Assembly: GCA_047495785.1 (NCBI GenBank)
Contig: JBLDXI010000059.1
Location: 329,601-393,600, forward strand
Origin: Lepidodermella squamata
Lineage: Eukaryota; Animalia; Gastrotricha
Direction: 5' to 3'
Length of the DNA stretch: 64,000 bases
Position numbers and translations under genes: made by a program. This document shows, piece by piece, positions 17,961-34,362 of the stretch. The notes below the pieces were generated by a model, which worked only from the letters and a program-made list of their open reading frames with translations, did no database searches and was not told the origin of the DNA. Positions within the stretch are counted from its first letter, which is position 1. Each line of letters opens with the position of its first letter.

Positions 17961-19174
17961 CAAGGGTTATTCACATTTGCAGTTAGATTGTTCAATATTT
18001 CAAAACTATAAAAATGTTTAGCTACCGAATAAAGGTAGATTTTTTAACTAGTAAAAAGCTTAGCGCGAATCGAATCTTTTTGAGTGTTGATTGAAGGCTT
18101 CTTTTCCTTAATTACCAGCATTTCTTGAACCAGGCAGTCGAACTTAGAATTACATTTGACAACTACTTTGAAAAAGGAATCGATTTGTTCTACATCTTGT
18201 CCACAGGCTTGGTGATGGGTTCCAACCTTGCTTTTCTTATGCTCATCAACGCAATAGAAAGATAAGTGCATAATGGGTAATGCTATTTCAACATAAATAA
18301 TGAATTTGAAAAGAAACCACCACCCAACACACGCGATAAAAAAACTGGAAGTCAGGGAAGACGTGAAAAGCGGCTTTTGATGAAAAATCAAACTTGCGAG
18401 TTGAGTGCATTATTTTTGTGGCAGTGCGAAGATTTTTCTAGAAGTGAAAGTACGCATGCCCGCATGCCTGTGCCCGACGCGCCGTCGCGGCCCTAACCAG
18501 CAGCCGGCTGTTCGGCCGAAAATCATCAGCATCAAAAGTTTAAGTCTGCGCTTAATTAGTTTCTTCTCATCATTATCATTATATCACCACAATCGCGTCT
18601 GACCTACAGCCGAGATGCGTCTGGGGCGGGTTTTTTTTCATGCGCCTTTTCGCATACAGCCAGTATTTGGCAACTGGTAAGTGGTAAGGTCACTGAAAGA
18701 CAGCTGCGCGCGAAAGGGGTGGAGCTTTCGATGACAGCAACAACAAAACTGGCCAATCAGCGAGCAGGGCTTGTTAAAAAAAAGCGTCGTTGAAACGACA
18801 ACAAAATTGGCGTATACAATTCGACACCTTCTCTCCGCTCTCACAGTGCCCACTCTGCGTGCCCCGGTAGGTACTAATTTTTACTGCCTGCTTTTTACAA
18901 GGTGGCAAACTACCGTAAAATGAGGCAATGTTATATTTGATCTTTGCTGGTAGCCACCTGCTATCATGATGTTAATGATGATAAATGATGATAAAAAAAT
19001 AAGGAATTATAATAATAATAATAATGATAAGAAACAAGATTCAGCCATTCGCCGCGTATCGATCATTTGCTTGATTTTATTATCACGAGCTTTCAACACT
19101 TGAAACCTGATCTCTACAGTTCTGTCGGTATTTTGTCCATTTTACTGTAGTTTCTCTTCCGACGGTGTTGCTGC

Positions 19175-19399
19175 TCATTTTGCCGCCGTAGCTGCTGTTG
19201 CGTCGGCGTTGTCTTTGGTCGATGCCTGCGAGCTGGCGGCTTGACCCTTGTTTTGATTGTTGCTGGGGCTAGCTTCGGATTCTTCTCGGATGCAAGTTTG
19301 TGAAAGGTCGTCGGGGAAATCGATTCCCGTAAAATCAGTAAGTTCCCACTCGGGGATGATGGGATTGCAGATAGGATTGAGTTCTTGGGAACCAGACAT
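19175..19399 (-). CDS. Small acidic/low-complexity ORF downstream of RepHel-pseudoUSP, possible cargo gene
   Basis: ATG ORF of 74 aa preceded by an attttag acceptor-like site; no recognisable domain. Confidence 0.3.
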   Translation of the reverse strand: MSGSQELNPICNPIIPEWELTDFTGIDFPDDLSQTCIREESEASPSNNQNKGQAASSQASTKDNADATAATAAK

Positions 19400-19983
19400 G
19401 TTGCTAGCGTCGTTGCAGTAGTTTTTCTTGTAGTTGTTATGTAGTATGTAAAAATGCCTAAAATATTATTTATGAAAACGAAAAAACAATCATGATGCGA
19501 TTCAGTTTGTTAAAAAAATACCCTTGGCAACTTTTCTTTTATATAAAAAAAAGCATTGCAGATCACGCTACCTTTGAATTTTTCTTACGTTTCTTATTTG
19601 TTTATTATTTTTCAGAAATTTCGCGCGAATAAAAGAGCAACCTGGCACGACGTAGCAGGTCTAACGATGCCGATGGCCAATTTACGCCGTGTTCAACCGC
19701 CTCGCCTTCTTCAAAGCGAGTCCAGTGACGGCCATCACGACGGTACGCAATATAGCTCGGAAGAACTTGAGGTTGGTTTCTTGTTTTATCAGCTTTGCTC
19801 TTTGCGCTTTGAGGTTTTTCAAAAATGATCGCTTCGAGCTTGAAGCTCGACTTGACGCCTGCTGCTACTGCTAGCGCGTTACGTTTTTTCGTTCGATCAC
19901 TCGTGGTATCAATGCTTGCACGATTGCGATTATTTTTATTATTATTATTATTGGTATTTCTGTTGATGATGATGCTGCTGCTT

Positions 19984-20033
<50 letters not shown>

Positions 20034-20816
20034 GCTGCTGCATAAGCTACTTGTATCATCATCATCATCATCATCAACGACCAGCTCTTCGACAAAGCAT
20101 AGGCGATATGTCGCTAAACCTGTGATATGGACGGGTAGCGCGGGCGCATCTGGGTATTCCCTCTGCACCTCTGCATCACTCCTTGTTATTTCGTTCGTTT
20201 TATCATCAGGAATCAAGTCAAGGCACAGGTAGTCAGATGCCTCTGATATGTAATATTTGCGTTCGATTTGTACCGTTTTATTACAACGCGGGCAATAATT
20301 ATCATGCGCATGTTGCTCCCACTCGTGCCCTTGCTGCTGCGCGGCTGTCGACGCTGCGCTCGGCCCATCAGCTTGACCAGCAGCAGTACCCGCCGCCGAG
20401 CAAGTGTGCCACTGAAATGCAGCAGTAAAAACGTCGCGCCCACTAAGCCCACGCTGGCGTTGTCGAGCCGTGGTTGTAATCTGCTTATTACTAACGCAAC
20501 AACTACCACTGTTGCTATTGCTGCTACAGCTAACAGCCAACATTGCATTTATTATTACCGATAAACGATAATAGCAATCTGTCATCTGGCTGGCACTCAG
20601 CACCGTTTTACACTCGCAGCAACGATTAAGCTGCTTTGTACGCATTTCCAACATATCTCTAATAGCAGTGTGATTTTCGTAAAGGCTGCGAACAAAATTT
20701 TCGAGTGGATGCGCATAATTTATGCGATTATTAGATAATGATGATAAAAGTAATGAAGACGACGACGACGACGACAAGTCGTGATCGCTTCGACTTTTTG
20801 CTATCATTTGTTCGTA

Positions 20817-21433
20817 CAGTGCACTTTCACTATAACGAAATTTACCGCGCCACCCCAATTCTTTCGCTATAGCGGTTTTTCGTTGTATTGGAAGTTTGAT
20901 AAAAAAAATACATCAATTAGAACTATTTCAACACTGTTTTTCATTATTCGAGTCACCAAACGATAATTCATTACAGATGATATGTTTGGGCACTGATAAT
21001 GGCCTCCAAAGTTGCTTTTATTGCCGAAAATCATTTGTTGGAACCCTTTATTACCCAAATAACTTCTTTTAAAATAATAATGATGTCATGAATTGGAAAT
21101 CGGAAAAAAATCGAGAAATATTCTGAAAAATGTAACGCACGTGCTCACCCTACATGCGTTTTCAATTTAAAGACGTTTACATTCTCTCCCCTCACTCATC
21201 TCTCATATGCAACGCTTGAAATCTTGATTTCGTTATAACCTACAAAATATTATGGATTTTTTTTCTGAGAAAGCCATAAAATTCTTTCGAAATAGCGATT
21301 TTTCGCTATACGTATTTCGTTATAGTGAAAGCTTTCCCCATGCAAAACATGCAGACGCTGACCGAGCCACCCAGATCCTTTCGATATAACGGTTTTTCGC
21401 TATATTGGCGTTCGCTATAGTGAAAGTGCACTG
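20817..21433. mobile_element. Tc1/pogo-type MITE inserted in the pseudo-USP coding region
   Basis: TIR cagtgcactttcactata / tatagtgaaagtgcactg; TA TSD (20815-16, 21434-35). Confidence 0.9.
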
Positions 21434-21658
21434 TACAAATCCTGTGTACGCAACGTATTTGCAACTGGTCGCGCTGCTCCAGTAGAGCCAGTGATGCCCG
21501 GCGATGTTGATTTTGCTGTTGCTGCTGTTGTTTTTGTTGTTGTCGTGGTTATCTCAGCACCACTCCTGCTATTGCTTATATACTTTTTCTTGTTGTTGCT
21601 ATCTAACCGCTCAACAGCACCTTGAATTGAGCAGTAAGCAGCTGCTAATGGTGTAAGC

Positions 21659-21688
21659 CTTGTAAGGAATAATACTATTCCTTACAAG
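21659..21688. mobile_element. 30-bp perfect hairpin micro-insertion with 8-bp TSD
   Basis: gtgtaagc|cttgtaaggaata-atac-tattccttacaag|gtgtaagc; creates the TAG that ends the 1163-aa ORF. Confidence 0.85.
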
Positions 21689-24600
21689 GTGTAAGCTCAG
21701 TTAGCAAAGTCACGTGCTCGTCAGTGAGTGCATCAGGTCTTATCATAGATGCGCAATCTTCGGCTTGCAGCAATGCTTCCAGCTGTTCATAAGCAAAAAC
21801 ACAGTGCAACAATGTATTCAACGCGCTCAATTGCGCGGCACCGTGATGTGGCATTTGTAACGGACGGCATAGCCTTAAATTGAACAAACACTTGTTTGTT
21901 CGTGCCGGCGTTGTTAGGCTGCTAGTGCTGGATTTTGTGATGCTACTGCTGCTGCTGCTGCTGCTGCCAACATTATTTTTAGGACTAATTTTAGCGCCAT
22001 TGCTCGGCTGCCGCGTTGCCGTGCGTGCGGCGTCGCCTGTGTTTTTGCGTTTTAGCCTCGTACCATCGTTGCTATCGCGGTCTAGCGGTAGCGAGCTGTC
22101 ATCATCACCGCTGGGACAATTCGACGCTTTTCGCGCCAAAGTGACATTTGTTGCGATATTATATATCATGGCCTCGCAGTTATTGCTCGTTTTAACATTT
22201 TCAACGCTGCTGTTGCTGCTGCGGCTGAGCTTTGATTTTTTACTTGCAACACCAGCCTGCTGTGCAGCCGATGAGGCCTCATCGGCGGCTGTACGTTTTT
22301 GTTGCGTGTTTGACTTTTTGGCTGGATGAATGTTGTCACCAACACTGCGACCGTAGCGAATAGTCACTCGTTTTCGCTGTGTCGGCGCGCCGGCGGCATC
22401 GCCAAGCGTCAGTGGGTCGTGATTATTGAAATCATCATCACTATTATTATAATTATTATTATTATTTTTACTGCTGCTAAAATCAGCAGTTGATTGGTCG
22501 ATGCTAATCGTTGTCGTATTTTCAACAGATACTTGGCGTATACGCCTAACTGTGGAGCCGCCGACGGCGCTTGCACCGCGCCCGCCTCTGCCGGTGAAAC
22601 TACCACCACGAGCAGCACCACGGCCTCGACCTCGGCCACCGCCTCGGCCCCTATCAGCGTGCGCCCGCGAAACTGTTGATACCACCACTGTGGGCAATGC
22701 CGAGGATGATTGTAGCTGCAGTTGACGCTCAACATCATCGCCGCCGGCTGCTAGGGTTACAGCGCTCGAGTCGTTCTCCTGCGCTCGCAAGCTAGCCTTG
22801 CTAAGGTACCAACGCCTGTCTTCGCAATTGATGACAGTTTTGTTACAACCTACTGGTGGCAAATTTATATCCGCGGCGTACTCTGAATAGACCGCCTCGG
22901 AATTGCGCATAACAGACTCGGCGAGGCTTTCGCGGCCTGTTGTTCGACGCAATCGGTCATATTCAATCAGCGCTAGTTTATTGACCATTTTCGCGCCGAT
23001 ACTACGGTCATCAAAGTTGATAAGCAGCAAGTCTTCAAGTTTACAGACTCGCGATAGCATGACGTAAGACTGAGCAACAGCAAAAATCGTCGGGCCCAAA
23101 TCTGCAATGACGCGTTTCAAAGTCATCCCCTGGCAGCGGTGAGCTGTCATAGCATAATTTAGGCTGACACACCACTGCTTGCGTTCAACTATCACACCGT
23201 TCACGAGTGGAAATCTACTTGTAACCGGGCCAATGTCGCATTCCAAGCCGTGATTGAATCTGATGCGCAGCGAAGCAACACGCCTCGGCTGCAATACTTC
23301 CACGGATGCGACGCCAGCAGTATTGTTGTTATTATTATTATTACTATTATTAGCTAACGATGATGATGATGATGAGCTGGTCGTTTTATGTTTTGCACAT
23401 TTGCGTTTGTTTTGATCAAAAGTAAACATGCGACGTTTGCGCTTCGCTGCCTTGATACCCGATGTTAGTTGCAACGTTGTTGTAGACGCCGTGGCTTTAT
23501 CGGCTTGGTTCATTTCAGGTATCGAGTCGGTGTAATTAATACGGACAATTTCGCCACATGCGCCATTTGTAAGTCCGCGCGTAAGGTCTAGATTTCTACG
23601 CAGCGAAATTTTAGCGCCTATTTTAAGCCGCAGCACTTTTTCCAAGCCCGCTGTTCTGGCGACTTGTGACTCGCCATCTTCTGTCAGCTTATTCAACGCC
23701 TTTCTAGCGAGTTCTTGATTGAAATTTCTCTGTGCATAAAATATATCTTCCGCTTCGAGCGTAATCATTCCGTCGTCACCGTTATCGCCGCCGTCGCCGC
23801 TAATGTTCTGCAAATTGTAAAGAACTGCTTCGTTTAGCTGATCAACTTGTGAATTTGTTGCAACAATACATGTCGTGTCTGGATTTTCAATCAAATAACG
23901 AGCTAAAATCTGCCATCGTTGTTCAACAGTTAGCTTGGTATTTTCTGCTAACAACGCACCCGCAGTAGCGTGATTGCTCTCGACAGTAGTAGTTGACGAG
24001 GCGGCGTCAAATTGCTCAAATTGCTGCTCACCTAACTGCTCAACTCGTGCGGTCACAAAGCCGTATTTTACGGCGTAGTAGTGAAAATCAAACAGACGTG
24101 TTAGCAAATGCTCGCGCCCCGGTGGTGCAAGAAGGCCTATGCGCGTTTCTGCGAGTATCTGTGCAAATAACGGATCGGCTTTTTGACGCATATTTATTGC
24201 CAACTCGTCGAATTCGAACGATTTCCACGGCGCTACTTCGATAGGTGACACGCCATGTAGGTTGTTAATAACATGGCCAGGTACATTTTCAAATACGCAT
24301 CCGTCATTTACGGGATTTAATTGTAGCAAATCACCCATTAAAAGAATGTGCATGCCGCCGAACGGCCGCACATAGTCATCCATGGCGCCGCCGTCGCAAA
24401 TTTCTCGCAAACGCTGGCTAACATAGGTGAGCATGACGTTGCTTAGCATGCTGCACTCGTCGATTACGATCAGGGCTACGTTTTTGTAAGCTACCCGCAA
24501 GGCATTAGCTAGTACGGCAAGTATCGACGTGTAACGTGGCGTTGAGCCATGCTCAACAGGCAAATTTACGCCCCGATGCACCGTAGTGCCGCCTATTGCG

Positions 24601-25166
24601 AATGATGCCTGGTCGGACGGTGCCATGGCCAACAAGTGCTTGCCGTGGCGCGATTTCAAGTAGAAGCGAAGCGTCGATACAAGTACGGACTTGCCTACAC
24701 CTGCATTGCCTGATACATAAATTTTAAGCTGCTGCGGTGGTGTGTTATCTGCAACATTAGCCGCAATATTGTTCACACGCGCGTCTGCTTCTGCTGGTGA
24801 TGATCTTTTATTTGCCTCATTATTATTATTATTATTATTATTATTTTTATTATTCACCTTGTACTTGTAAACAAACTTGTCGTGAACGCTTGCCTTGGGA
24901 CTGGCCCAATCGTTGTCGAGACGTTGCTCAACAACTGATATGACGCGGTCAAATACGCGCCGCTGATCAGGATTTAGCCTATCAATTAGCATCGTTAGAC
25001 GAGCCTCGGCTTCTTCGGCTGTTAAATTTTCGAAATCTTCATCTTTATTGTTAACAATCTGCTGCATCTCTGTTCCGTGGTTTACAGCATTAGCCGCCAC
25101 CTCGGTGTCACTCTCGTGAGCACCACTAGCGTCGTTGTCGTCGCTATCATCATCATCATCAATCAA
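21675..25166 (-). CDS. PIF1-family SF1B helicase portion of Helitron RepHel, followed by an RGG/low-complexity linker
   Basis: LNPDQRRVF, VSGNAGVGKS, IVIDECSML, FGGMHILLMGDLLQLNPV, NMRQKADPLF, LKIGAKISLRRNLDLTRGLTNG, YAMTAHRCQGMTL, QSYVMLSRV. Confidence 0.93.
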   Translation of the reverse strand: MIDDDDDSDDNDASGAHESDTEVAANAVNHGTEMQQIVNNKDEDFENLTAEEAEARLTMLIDRLNPDQRRVFDRVISVVEQRLDNDWASPKASVHDKFVYKYKVNNKNNNNNNNNNEANKRSSPAEADARVNNIAANVADNTPPQQLKIYVSGNAGVGKSVLVSTLRFYLKSRHGKHLLAMAPSDQASFAIGGTTVHRGVNLPVEHGSTPRYTSILAVLANALRVAYKNVALIVIDECSMLSNVMLTYVSQRLREICDGGAMDDYVRPFGGMHILLMGDLLQLNPVNDGCVFENVPGHVINNLHGVSPIEVAPWKSFEFDELAINMRQKADPLFAQILAETRIGLLAPPGREHLLTRLFDFHYYAVKYGFVTARVEQLGEQQFEQFDAASSTTTVESNHATAGALLAENTKLTVEQRWQILARYLIENPDTTCIVATNSQVDQLNEAVLYNLQNISGDGGDNGDDGMITLEAEDIFYAQRNFNQELARKALNKLTEDGESQVARTAGLEKVLRLKIGAKISLRRNLDLTRGLTNGACGEIVRINYTDSIPEMNQADKATASTTTLQLTSGIKAAKRKRRMFTFDQNKRKCAKHKTTSSSSSSSLANNSNNNNNNNTAGVASVEVLQPRRVASLRIRFNHGLECDIGPVTSRFPLVNGVIVERKQWCVSLNYAMTAHRCQGMTLKRVIADLGPTIFAVAQSYVMLSRVCKLEDLLLINFDDRSIGAKMVNKLALIEYDRLRRTTGRESLAESVMRNSEAVYSEYAADINLPPVGCNKTVINCEDRRWYLSKASLRAQENDSSAVTLAAGGDDVERQLQLQSSSALPTVVVSTVSRAHADRGRGGGRGRGRGAARGGSFTGRGGRGASAVGGSTVRRIRQVSVENTTTISIDQSTADFSSSKNNNNNYNNSDDDFNNHDPLTLGDAAGAPTQRKRVTIRYGRSVGDNIHPAKKSNTQQKRTAADEASSAAQQAGVASKKSKLSRSSNSSVENVKTSNNCEAMIYNIATNVTLARKASNCPSGDDDSSLPLDRDSNDGTRLKRKNTGDAARTATRQPSNGAKISPKNNVGSSSSSSSSITKSSTSSLTTPARTNKCLFNLRLCRPLQMPHHGAAQLSALNTLLHCVFAYEQLEALLQAEDCASMIRPDALTDEHVTLLTELTPCKE

Positions 25167-27295: not shown

Positions 27296-30200
27296 TGCTG
27301 TTTTTACCTACTTTGTCATCATCATCATCATCATCATCATCAGCTGCTTCACTCGCTGAATTACCGCTGCTGGCAGACGCATCACTCTTATCGCTGCTGC
27401 TGTTGCTGTTACTGCTATGATGTTTTGTAACAAAATCTTCGTCATCATATTCTTGATACATTCGCGCATCTCCGCCTGGCAATTCATCTTCAATTTCGAA
27501 TATTACGCTATCTAGTAATGTTTTTGTTGGCAACCTCAAAATATTTCTCAGGTATGGATTAGCTCGCCGTGCGGCATTTATAGCCTCGCATAAATGTTTA
27601 AAGTTGGTCATATTTTCATATACTATTTTTCTGTCCTCTTTAGGAATAGAGCGCGTGAAAATGATCAGATATGGATCAAGTATATTATTAAGAAAATCTT
27701 GTCGCAACTTGTTTTTCAAATCGCCACTCTTGGCATTTGCAGTAGCTGCTCGACTGTTACGTATATTATTAGAATCTGGGTTGGCTATAACAAAAGGATT
27801 CCTAGTAAAGTCTGACGATGCAGAATTACAATCGGCATCACTTTCGGCTGCTGTGTCGTCTAGCAAGCGGTCAAAGTTTATTTCAAGATGATTTTCTAAC
27901 AACCTTTGATTTTCATTATTAATTCCTAATAAGCATTCGTCATTATCTTGCCCGCTTGATGTTTCTTGTTCAACGTCAAAGTTTTCCCACTTATTCCTGA
28001 AAAGGTGTTCGGCGAATACCTGGAAGGGCATCGGAAAATTCCACGCAATAAAGAAGCTGTGACAGTTCGAAATCACGGCTTTTCGAACTGCCACCATGTC
28101 AGTTATTTCAAAGCAGACTTAGAACTTGGAGATTTTTTGAATCAGAAAATATATTCAGCACTTGAACAGAGACAGATTAAATTTTCCAAAATGTTAGAGA
28201 TCGACTAAATTGTCGCTTTGTTGAATCTGTCCTTTTGTCGATGAGAATGGGGACATATTCAAAAGAGGCGGGACAACTTGTTTCATCTGTCCCTTACTTG
28301 TATCTGTCCCAGTGCTCTCGTCGAGAGGCGGGACAAATTTGAAGAAGAAAGGGACAAATACCAGCGAGAAAAGGACGCGTTATTTTGAACCGGGGCATTT
28401 ATTAGAGTGATCAACAGCGCTAATTGTTGATTCATTATCGCTGTCTTTACAAAAAATTATGTCGTCACCTTCATCCTGATCGCTTTGATCGCTTTGATCA
28501 GACCCTGCTGTTTCTACTTCTTGATCGTTATCTTCGCCCATTTCATCATTATCTTCTAATAACGCGGCGGATTTATCATCATCTACCCATGCATCGCTGT
28601 CGTCGTCATCGTCGCTGTCATCACTTGATTGATGCACGGCGGCTACTTGCTGCACTGCGCTATACTTTGTTCGGTTAAATTCGAGTAGTTCTTGGTAATA
28701 TATGTTCTCAGCTGGCTTATCGCGTGATTTTTGGCGAATTTTCGACAAACAAACTACTTGTTTGCAATTTTTAGCTTCTTTGCATGAAATGCATGTAAAA
28801 TAGCTCAAAGCTCGGCATCTGTTGTAGTAATTTATCATTTCTTGTCGAAAAGTTACGCGCAGCGCCTGCTCATTTACGGGCTGACGATTAGACAAATTAA
28901 CGCTACGAATAACGCCTGTCAGTTGCATCTTTTCGCTTATCAGACGATTGAGACCTTCGTTGCCGGCATCGTTGATCATTTTTTCTAAATTACCGATGCG
29001 CTTATTAAGCGAAATTAGCTTATATACACGGTTAACAATGGGGCCCAATTTTTTATAATAATGGCTAGAAATTGCTCGCAGTTTTAGTAGCATTGACGAG
29101 CAATAAGGCGCACAAGGTGAATAACAAATCTGCTTGTGGCCATGTGTTTGTTTTCTGCGGCGGCTTTTACTTTTGCGCGGCTTGTTACGCTTCGCTGCAC
29201 TACTAGCTTGCTCGTTCACGCAACCCTCAGCTCTTTCTTCATCAGTTTGATAAGTACATTTGTCAATGTTTTTCAAATATGCATGCAACTGTTGCCAATC
29301 GCTTATGGCATAGATTGATATTAAAAATTCTAGCATTACTAACCACGCGTCTGCCTCGAAAGGCATTACACATAGCTCCTTACAGCATTCCCAGCAAGCG
29401 ATTGGCGGTTTAGGCTCAACGCGTTTACTACGGCGCCCCATGTTGTTGTCCTTGCTATTTGAACGAGGCTCTAAGCGATAATTCGGATATATGCCGTGCA
29501 CCGCGCCGTTTTCGTCAATACTACAATAAATGCGAACAAATCTCTTCGTGGAGGCAAAATTGCTGCTTCCTGCACGGCCAATGGCGCATCGTTTTCAGCC
29601 ATCATCAGCATCATTGCTTCGTTTGACATAATATTATCAATGGTGGCGGTAGTAGTGCGCGATGGTATCATTGTGTCATAATTTGCTGGGTCAAACGGAT
29701 TGCGCTCATCCACTGTCTCTTCGCTACCATCTACGCTACAGTATTGTAAATGATTTAACGGCGTCGCAATTTCCGAATAAGGTGGTGGTGGTGGATCGTC
29801 ATTTTTAGCGACTTGGCGCGAGCGAAATATGCTCTTTCTCTCATCTTTCGGCAGGTAATCAAATTCGACACTCGCGCGGCTGCACTTATTAACACCGCCG
29901 CCGCCGCCATTTTCCCGTTCATACTGCTTAATTTTTGCGCAGAGGTGTTGATCGAGTGTATTTTGATAACAAAAGTATGGCTCTTGTGTTTGCCTGTGCA
30001 TGCTTTCGCCTAACAATGCCCTAATTTTATCCTCTTCATTTTCGACCGTAGTCGATAGCGGTATGGCTTGCCAAGCGATTTCTCGCAAATTGTTAGCTGC
30101 TTTTAGCTGTTGCTTCTTTAGCTCATGAAGCTCGTACAGGGTAGTTCGTGCTTGATTCTCGGCATCAAACTTGAACGTCGCTTCGCGTTGCTTTTTAGAA

Positions 30201-31979: not shown

Positions 31980-34362
31980 CTACGAACTGGCGCTTTCGGC
32001 ATCCAAACGTTCGTACATGAACAAGTACGGCTGGGCGTCATACAGCCCGGTATTATCTTTATTCAGCCGAATGTTGTTATTGAAATCGACGACTACTGGC
32101 CGGTGGCTATCATCTGCTCGCCACCACAAGCCATCTCTGCGTCGCAAGTACACAAAGTAATGGCCGCTATGCATCGACCCGCCGCGATGGCAAATAACAC
32201 CTGACATGCGATATCGAACTCTGCTGCCATCACGCATGGGAAGGTAAAAGTACTCGTTAAAGTCCACCATTGCTGTGACTTTATATTCAATAGTGTTGAC
32301 AATTCTTTTGACGCCATTTGTTTCTTGGAAAATATCTCTTCTCATTGATCTTTTTTGTTGAATCAATAAATTTTCCGGGGCTTTCACAATTTTGAGTGCA
32401 TTTTTCAGCTTGCCACCGCATGCTAAACAAAAGCTAACTTTATCCGGGTAACACGGGTCTAAAATGGCGCGCAAGCTTTCGTCCATTGTTCGGTAATTCT
32501 TAGCTTTTACCTTCTCGCAGGCGTCAATCGCTACTGGAACTTGAATGTCATTGAAAATATTGCTAGGTGTTTGCACGGATTCACGGTTACACTGATCACA
32601 CACCGACACGCCAATTTGTTGCCCTGTAAAGCTGTTCAATTCCGAGCCTATCCAATCAGTGTCACCTAATAGGGCTGTTATTATGTCATGCACATCGTTC
32701 TGCTGCGATGGATCATATGTCAGACGGTCGGTGATGAGAGTTGCGAAGCCGTCACAAACGGGCGTTATATTAGGCGCCATGTCGCCAACAGAGTTGACAT
32801 AGCCCAGCACGAATTGGCGAAATGCTTGTCGCAAGCAAGTTTTGCGTTTCTCATTGTTATCGACAGTCAGTAAAGGCAGGCATGCCAAGCAAAAGCATTG
32901 ATTTGACTCGCAATACTTGCCCTTTACAACTTGTTCGACAAATCCTGGGCAATTTAACAGCAGTTGCACAACCGAAATGTCGCAACACTGAACGCTAGTG
33001 TTATTGCGCACAGGCAACAACTTTTGCGGTGTGTAATCAATACCTCTGCTGCTGCTGCTGCTGCTGCTGTGACTGTGATCATCTATAACACTGGCTGTGG
33101 CGTTATATGACGACGATGACGATGATGCTGCTGCTGCAGAGGAAGCCTGCTCATTTCGCTCAATTCTGTTAGCTCCAAAGCAATTATCGGCAACTCCTAT
33201 ATTACACGAGTTTACCTCAACAAAAACACCATTGACACGGGTAGTGCTCTCAGATGATTTTTTATTCGATTCAAAATTATTAATGTAATCATCATCATCA
33301 TAATCAAAATCACGATTAGGAGGCGCGTAAAAGACATCGCCATCAAGATACGGCAACTCGTCGTCATTTTCAGCATGAAAAATAATGCCGCCGCCACCGC
33401 AGTCGCCACTTTCCGTCATCACATTACTGCAGCTAGCATCAGACGGCGGTAAATCAATCAACGGCAAATCATCATCCTCATCATTGTTCAATATCGCAAC
33501 AGCCTCACGAGCGTTAGAACTAGCTAAACATTCCGGCTGCTGAGTGGCGCTCTCGGCGTTTCGCTCAGGCAGTTTTGGCAAGGCTGGCGATGCTGATGAT
33601 GATGATGTTAAAGGAAGATCTTCCGGCCCCATTGTGACAAACCTTAGAACGGGCTTGCTACCTGAAGCCTCTTCACGTTGAACAGGAGTCAGCATAAAAA
33701 CTTTCAATGCCTGTTCTTTGCTTTGGGCAATAGGTGCCTTCGAATTACATATGGCTAGTCCCAAATCGGCAAGTGTCAATCGAATACCCTCACTCGATGG
33801 ATTAGAAGGCAAACTAGCATGAGTGAGGTTTTGTTTAACCGCCTGCGCATAGCCTGAGATGCTAGTTGGCTGCGCTGGGAGACTGGCGGTAGCGTTTTGG
33901 ACGCAATTTTCGGCCACGTTTACAAATTCACCGCTGTTAGCCGCTGTTCCTGTTTCAGAAGCAACCGGAACAGAACTATGCATAGCGGCACCACCACTGC
34001 CCTTATGTGCATCAACATGACCGGCTTTTACACTTGCGGCTTGCGGGATTAGAACCACCGCCGCCGGCTAGCCCTTTGTGGATTTTTTTTTAAGAAACGA
34101 GCGCTTCTTTACTCTTACCAGAAGACGTGCGAGTTTTCGACAACTCGGCGTCAACTTCCTCCTTCCGCCAGAGAAACGCGCAAAGCGAAATTTTATGACT
34201 ATTTAAGTGATAGACACTCGCCAAACGCAACCTGTCATTATGACTTAAAAAACGCGACACGAAAATGCCTTCATACTTATTACTTATTATAACAGCGTCC
34301 GTAGTTTTTGGCGGAATATCCAAGAGTTCTGGCAACTTCAGTAGGTAAGTAGTACGACTCAT
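31980..34362 (-). CDS. Ubiquitin-specific protease (USP/peptidase C19) encoded by the Helitron; probable start at 34362 with a frameshift near 34085, ORF 31980-34058 uninterrupted
   Basis: Cys box RNNTSVQCCDISVVQLL (Cys 32985-32987), QQNDVHDII, CDQC..CLAC, APENLLIQQKR, YRMSGVICHRGGSMHSGHYFVY..WWRADDS, PYLFMYER. Confidence 0.85.

Follow-up and report, generated by a model that had tools for sequence, protein, structure and literature searches.

Deubiquitinases of the OTU, VTD and USP classes have repeatedly been captured by Helitron-like transposons, and we know of nobody who can say what role they play in transposition. In a stretch of 64,000 nucleotides from the gastrotrich Lepidodermella squamata (GenBank contig JBLDXI010000059.1, positions 329,601 to 393,600; the whole stretch is called the window here), the minus strand carries one long, recently dead Helitron-like transposase gene, in which a PIF1-type helicase is followed by a tail that resembles a USP (peptidase C19) domain and has none of its catalytic residues. 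The locus is read as the C-terminal end of a dead Helitron-like transposase with a USP-derived, catalytically dead tail, and a probability of about 0.7 is given to this reading as a whole. The capture of UCH is itself published, as it is among 20 domains that Helitron-like elements carry stably, in subgroups c and d of HLE2; DUF6570 upstream of Rep is the marker of HLE2 (HELIANO; PMC11417382). What is new here is the dead state of the C-terminal domain, combined with a further USP of that frame which looks intact.

USP39/Sad1 and USP52/PAN2 contain USP-type domains without the canonical Cys and His and are thought to act as scaffolds in larger machines (PMC10919355). The Lepidodermella tail resembles them as a USP-type domain without catalytic Cys and His. 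However, they are encoded by conserved genes of the host, their folds are solved or well modelled and their partners are known, whereas the tail belongs to a single dead transposon copy without relatives. The inactive tegument-like deubiquitinase domains of insects (iVTD) are related to the VTD deubiquitinases of Helitrons, and two deubiquitinase domains are possible in one Helitron (PMC9741609). The likeness to the present case is that deubiquitinase domains associated with Helitrons also exist as catalytically dead derivatives. VTD does not have the USP fold, and iVTD are genes of the host that lie outside transposons; the dead domain of the present case, in contrast, lies within the transposase frame.

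The best Rep-helicase (RepHel) relative found is the protein XP_067209109 of the ant Linepithema humile, which, like its sibling XP_067214677, carries Rep, helicase and UCH in a single open reading frame (ORF). In both ant proteins the Cys box, two CxxC pairs, GHY and DD are intact, and UCH is significant in Pfam. Both are collinear with window positions 27196-22908, the RepHel parts being 27-40% identical. In the ant Helitrons as in the Lepidodermella element, Rep (HUH), the PIF1 helicase and a C-terminal USP-type domain lie in one frame, and both end just past the last USP strand. They differ in the terminal domain: the ant UCH is intact, whereas the Lepidodermella tail is invisible to profiles, lacks the triad, is parted from the helicase by a low-complexity linker of ~330 aa and has low-complexity inserts. 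They differ also upstream, where the Lepidodermella element has the second, intact-looking N-terminal USP in the same frame and the ant locus has DUF6570, which is undetected in the window.

The transposase frame and its two insertions

All the features described (ORFs, Rep, helicase and tail) are carried by the minus strand. The helicase ORF and the tail ORF (Table 1) are separated by a micro-insertion and a miniature inverted-repeat transposable element (MITE). When the 38 bp of the micro-insertion and the 619 bp of the MITE with one TA were excised, a single ORF of 1634 codons was obtained, whose sole stop is the terminal TAA and whose residues at the junctions are TELTP-LAAAYCSIQ and TLRTQDL-YEQMIAK. 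An earlier sequence-only reading had proposed this stop-free join and quoted the same junctions, which were reproduced. It had further described the insertions as nested; they are instead two separate hits at neighbouring sites of one gene. The 1163-aa ORF is terminated by a stop within the palindrome insertion (21675-21677), and the 417-aa ORF opens with 14 codons of MITE sequence.

The middle piece between the insertions (72 codons) is stop-free in just one frame, the one dictated by the 38-bp shift. At an off-frame stop frequency of 7.9%, the chance that it would be open and also land in the correct frame is ~0.003 x 1/3 = ~0.001. This coincidence would have to be accepted if the two ORFs had never been one gene and their in-frame join were accidental, an idea for which nothing speaks beyond the general possibility. 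An accidental join would also leave unaccounted for the clean target duplications at both insertions and the USP-like signal that begins ahead of the first insertion and resumes past the second; we hold it to be next to impossible. The insertion history and the former fusion of helicase to tail are thus solid.

Table 1. Features of the 3′ part of the Lepidodermella transposase gene (window coordinates)
Feature	Position	Strand	Basis or remark
Helicase ORF, 1163 aa	21675-25166	-	ORF list
PIF1-type helicase core, Walker A and B intact	22908-24731	-	Pfam PIF1 1e-19; tblastn collinear with ant XP_067209109
Cys-box-like segment, residues 1102-1124 at the end of the helicase ORF	21795-21863	-	Block alignment; language-model match
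Micro-insertion: 30-bp palindrome (13-nt arms, 4-nt loop) plus one 8-bp duplicate	21651-21688	.	Frame shift by 2
Piece of the former ORF between the insertions, ~72 codons, in part of low complexity	21436-21650	-	Frame map
MITE, 617 bp, non-coding, GC 36%	20817-21433	.	TA duplication at 20815-20816 and 21434-21435
Tail ORF, 417 aa	19605-20858	-	ORF list; no significant Pfam family
Remainder of the tail, 403 codons	19608-20816	-	Block alignment; language-model look-ups
QQD-box-like helix	20682-20717	-	
First CxxC (CCEC, residues 80-83 of the 417-aa piece)	20610-20621	-	
Second CxxC (CPRC, residues 189-192) and following strand	20214-20294	-	
Low-complexity D/S/N insert	~19880-20075	-	
His-box-like strand	19812-19844	-	
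PSY in place of GHY, after a 12-residue insertion	19743-19760	-	Catalytic His absent
EE in place of DD	within 19695-19724	-	Catalytic Asp absent
Final LLFY strand	19608-19646	-	
Natural stop TAA of the former fusion ORF	19605-19607	-	AATAAA signal within ~10 nt downstream

The MITE is bounded by perfect 18-nt terminal inverted repeats (CAGTGCACTTTCACTATA). Depth was taken from the Logan contigs of the sole public run that holds the locus. Contig depth is 400-800 across the MITE, with many variant letters, against ~50 in the flanks and the gene, and contigs of other MITE copies diverge exactly at 20815 and 21435. The depth excess and these contig breaks establish the MITE as a real multicopy mobile unit with the boundaries given in Table 1. 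In its TA duplication, short terminal inverted repeats, length of 617 bp, AT-richness, copy number and internally deleted variants it resembles the Stowaway-like MITEs of the Tc1/mariner type. The contig of another copy skips 485 bp of the interior (20894-21380), which corresponds to a deletion derivative of ~130 bp in the genome. An extra inverted copy of the terminal repeat was seen inside the MITE at 21314-21331.

On either side of the palindrome of the micro-insertion (21659-21688) stands the direct repeat GTGTAAGC (21651-21658 and 21689-21696); a 9-bp duplication with a 29-bp insert fits equally well. No other copy of the 30-bp palindrome was found in the 64-kb window, and its 13-nt arms match no transposon terminal repeat known to us, hAT- and P-type repeats having been considered. 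Over 6 nt there is a likeness between the right arm (CCTTACAAG) and the reverse complement of the duplicated target (GCTTACAC), and for this reason the micro-insertion, instead of being a mini-element, could be a footprint of repair or excision. In a second contig, at about half the local depth, AATAAT is added in the palindrome loop after 21667; the AAT run may differ in length between alleles.

The frame extends far upstream of the helicase. Nearly all of 34067-19608 (minus strand; 14.4 kb) lies in one frame, which is interrupted by ~6-8 stops, 4-6 short frameshifts and the two insertions. Upstream of the helicase there are split Rep ORFs with Pfam Helitron_like_N and an intact HUH motif (HFH), and farther upstream a 692-aa ORF matches Pfam UCH at 4e-17 and has the catalytic Cys, His and Asp. 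One stop (31980-31982) alone parts this N-terminal USP ORF from the next 487 codons, and the ~5 kb between the N-terminal USP and Rep hold no Pfam family. In the living element the protein may have been more than 4,500 residues long. It was also considered whether the N-terminal USP ORF might instead be the C-terminal domain of another Helitron lying upstream; this was rejected, as there is no helicase beyond 34058 and the ORF is in the same frame as the rest. None of the RNA runs holds the stretch; shares of 0.05 in them probably come from simple repeats.

Motifs and ancestry of the tail

Motifs were placed by a MAFFT block alignment of the tail with two intact USPs, an alignment without statistical support in a setting where MAFFT mis-registers real USPs against the tail sequence. 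In the MAFFT register the position of the catalytic Cys is occupied by Ala1110, and after a small shift by Gln1112; with the replacements at the two other positions, the triad reads Ala or Gln for Cys, Ser for His and Glu for Asp. The order of the motifs is that of a USP: Cys box, QQD, CCEC, CPRC with its typical strand, His-box strand and LLFY. Both CxxC pairs of the fingers zinc ribbon are kept and lie between the QQD box and the His box, and the protein ends within ~10 residues of the last strand, as in both intact USPs. In the sequence-only reading the tail had been said to keep the USP scaffold and four zinc ligands and to lack the catalytic Cys and His. The two CxxC pairs and the replaced triad agree with this description, but for the scaffold the alignment-based tests were non-significant.

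A tail derived from a USP could in principle still hydrolyse ubiquitin or a ubiquitin-like protein through residues other than the canonical ones, an argument that has been made for USP39 and USP52/PAN2. Activity has been claimed for USPs that lack the canonical triad (PMC10919355), and a His-Cys pair is found in the tail ~10 residues past the Cys-box position. However, what has been claimed for USP39 and USP52 is itself in dispute, and in the tail no triad residue is kept and the loop before the His position carries the 12-residue insertion. Hydrolysis by such a route appears very improbable.

A lead on the ancestry of the tail, rather than a defining test, was obtained with Atlas, a protein language-model feature look-up. 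With the whole 417-aa piece, UCH clusters accounted for 42 of the 60 matches and held the first rank (0.92). The tail of the helicase ORF (residues 1070-1163), which lies ahead of both insertions, gave UCH at ranks 1, 3 and 4 (0.89-0.90), and the His-box piece (the last 90 residues) gave UCH in 56 of 60 matches (0.91). Since non-overlapping pieces of differing composition all give UCH first, chance agreement is unlikely.

A number of results weigh against the reading proposed above. The Atlas scores of 0.90-0.92, with 128-162 shared features, fall in the zone that the tool assigns to 'chance or distant relative'. Pfam gave no UCH match on the 417-aa piece, its sub-pieces or the tail of the helicase ORF (best UCH_1 E=4.8). 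Searches with phmmer against PDB returned nothing relevant and no homology to USP39/Sad1 or USP52/PAN2, and an exhaustive phmmer search of 1.84 billion representative proteins returned a single low-complexity match. Compared with the element's own N-terminal USP by BLASTP and by Smith-Waterman with shuffles, the tail was at shuffle level; in comparisons with real USPs, those of the ant included, a two-sequence hidden Markov model with shuffles and hhalign were likewise at shuffle level and non-significant. In a permutation test over the columns invariant between two real USPs, 15 identities were counted against 16.1 +/- 3.2 in shuffled, realigned sequence. AlphaFold2, run on the single sequence without an alignment, produced an unusable model (mean predicted local distance difference test score 36.6, predicted template modelling score 0.22). 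The tail is represented by one copy without relatives, which gives no measure of selection on it. At the level of the whole element, DUF6570 was undetected in any upstream ORF of the window, and the element is not filed firmly under HLE2.

Word searches with the 417-aa piece and with the Cys-box tail found no relatives, and neither did a viral scan or scans of metagenomes, for which the His-box piece and a USP alignment served as queries. As the similarity between the tail and the N-terminal USP is at shuffle level, the idea that the tail is a recent duplicate of that domain has no support.

These null results are what would be expected if the tail were not derived from a USP at all and represented a lineage-specific helicase extension of zinc-ribbon and low-complexity sequence, its USP-like motifs and language-model matches being due to coincidence or composition. 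Every statistical sequence test is null, AlphaFold gave no fold, and the shared-feature counts in Atlas are under the level typical of true family members. Such an extension does not, however, explain why three pieces, two of them non-overlapping and of differing composition, each give UCH first. In the closest relative, moreover, a real USP occupies the corresponding position and the protein terminates where the tail does, and the tail has the two CxxC pairs, with a USP-type context around the second, in the right order. A non-USP origin is considered unlikely, and we infer that the tail is, with good probability, of USP ancestry.

Age of the catalytic loss and possible role of the tail

No sibling copies at a likeness of at least 80% were found in the contigs of the run, in which the gene is at single-copy depth and without variant letters. 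Random substitutions in the frame would create a stop in 4.2% of cases, and from 6-8 stops in ~13.5 kb the neutral decay of this copy is estimated at ~1-1.5%. In the same copy HUH, Walker A and B, and the Cys, His and Asp of the N-terminal USP are all intact, and ~400 non-repetitive tail codons are stop-free though the domain has diverged past recognition. Because these codons stayed open during the divergence, read-through of the tail would have been selected while the element lived. A decay of 1-1.5% is too little to erase a domain or to hit three specific codons (~1e-5), which would make the loss older than the death of the copy.

The catalytic loss thus probably predates this copy's death, and, with more distant relatives keeping an active-looking C-terminal USP, it would be specific to the lineage. 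The proposal of the sequence-only reading that the pseudo-enzyme state preceded the decay is supported indirectly, through the decay estimate and the other motifs that stayed intact. On the opposite account the tail was an active USP until the copy died, and Cys and His were lost by post-mortem decay. The copy is indeed dead, with stops, frameshifts and two insertions, and there are relatives with active-looking C-terminal USPs. Such decay would nevertheless have had to strike all three triad codons within so small an estimated total, to spare the motifs of Rep, helicase and N-terminal USP, and to leave the tail free of stops while making it unrecognisable to Pfam. Late loss is highly unlikely.

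The history of the element that we favour, with a USP-derived tail, would be as follows. In the living element, the PIF1 helicase ran through the low-complexity linker into a tail of ~540 residues. This tail would descend from the USP domain by which the helicase is extended in one subgroup of Helitron-like elements. In the present lineage the domain would have diverged beyond the reach of profiles, losing the three catalytic residues and gaining low-complexity loops while keeping the CxxC pairs and several core motifs. Since the frame remained open, the element is taken to have been still active during this divergence. Later, the tail of this copy was cut in three by a TA-targeting MITE and the 30-bp palindrome, and ~10-14 other point lesions are present upstream.

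The roles put forward in the sequence-only reading (ubiquitin binding, scaffold, partner of the active USP) are speculative. A role of the tail, if there was any, would most likely have been binding of ubiquitin or of a partner, at odds no better than even. A maintained module and a relic that the N-terminal USP had made superfluous are about equally likely. A more specific proposal is a giant protein in which an active N-terminal USP is accompanied by a maintained dead C-terminal USP, the putative ubiquitin-binding or allosteric partner of the live USP or of the helicase; this is regarded as improbable. To our knowledge, a pair of deubiquitinase and pseudo-deubiquitinase inside a transposase has been described neither for USPs nor for mobile elements. 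If the proposal were true, an in-frame tail kept after catalytic loss beside an intact USP would point to a binding or structural job of the captured domain besides catalysis, and the N-terminal USP and the tail form a concrete pair of domains for testing this. The case rests on a single dead copy without relatives, and its value is that of a lead and of a clean worked example of how a gene can be read across transposon insertions.

Observations at the ends of the gene

Upstream of Rep, a 68-aa stretch (window 28938-29141) is common to the ant locus (L001:9075-9272, where L001 is a stretch of Linepithema humile CM080992.1), with E ~2e-6; in the ant it lies directly upstream of DUF6570. The annotated start of ant XP_067209109 is at L001:10001, and two open frames, of 622 and 381 codons, directly precede it (L001:7159-10121), the second with DUF6570 at 8e-16. 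This arrangement suggests that the ant gene model is truncated at its N-terminus. At the opposite end of the Lepidodermella gene, ~100 nt past the transposase stop and AATAAA, there is an ORF of 131 codons (19117-19509, minus strand) with an ATG at 19397, whose product would be acidic and rich in Ser, Ala and Gln.

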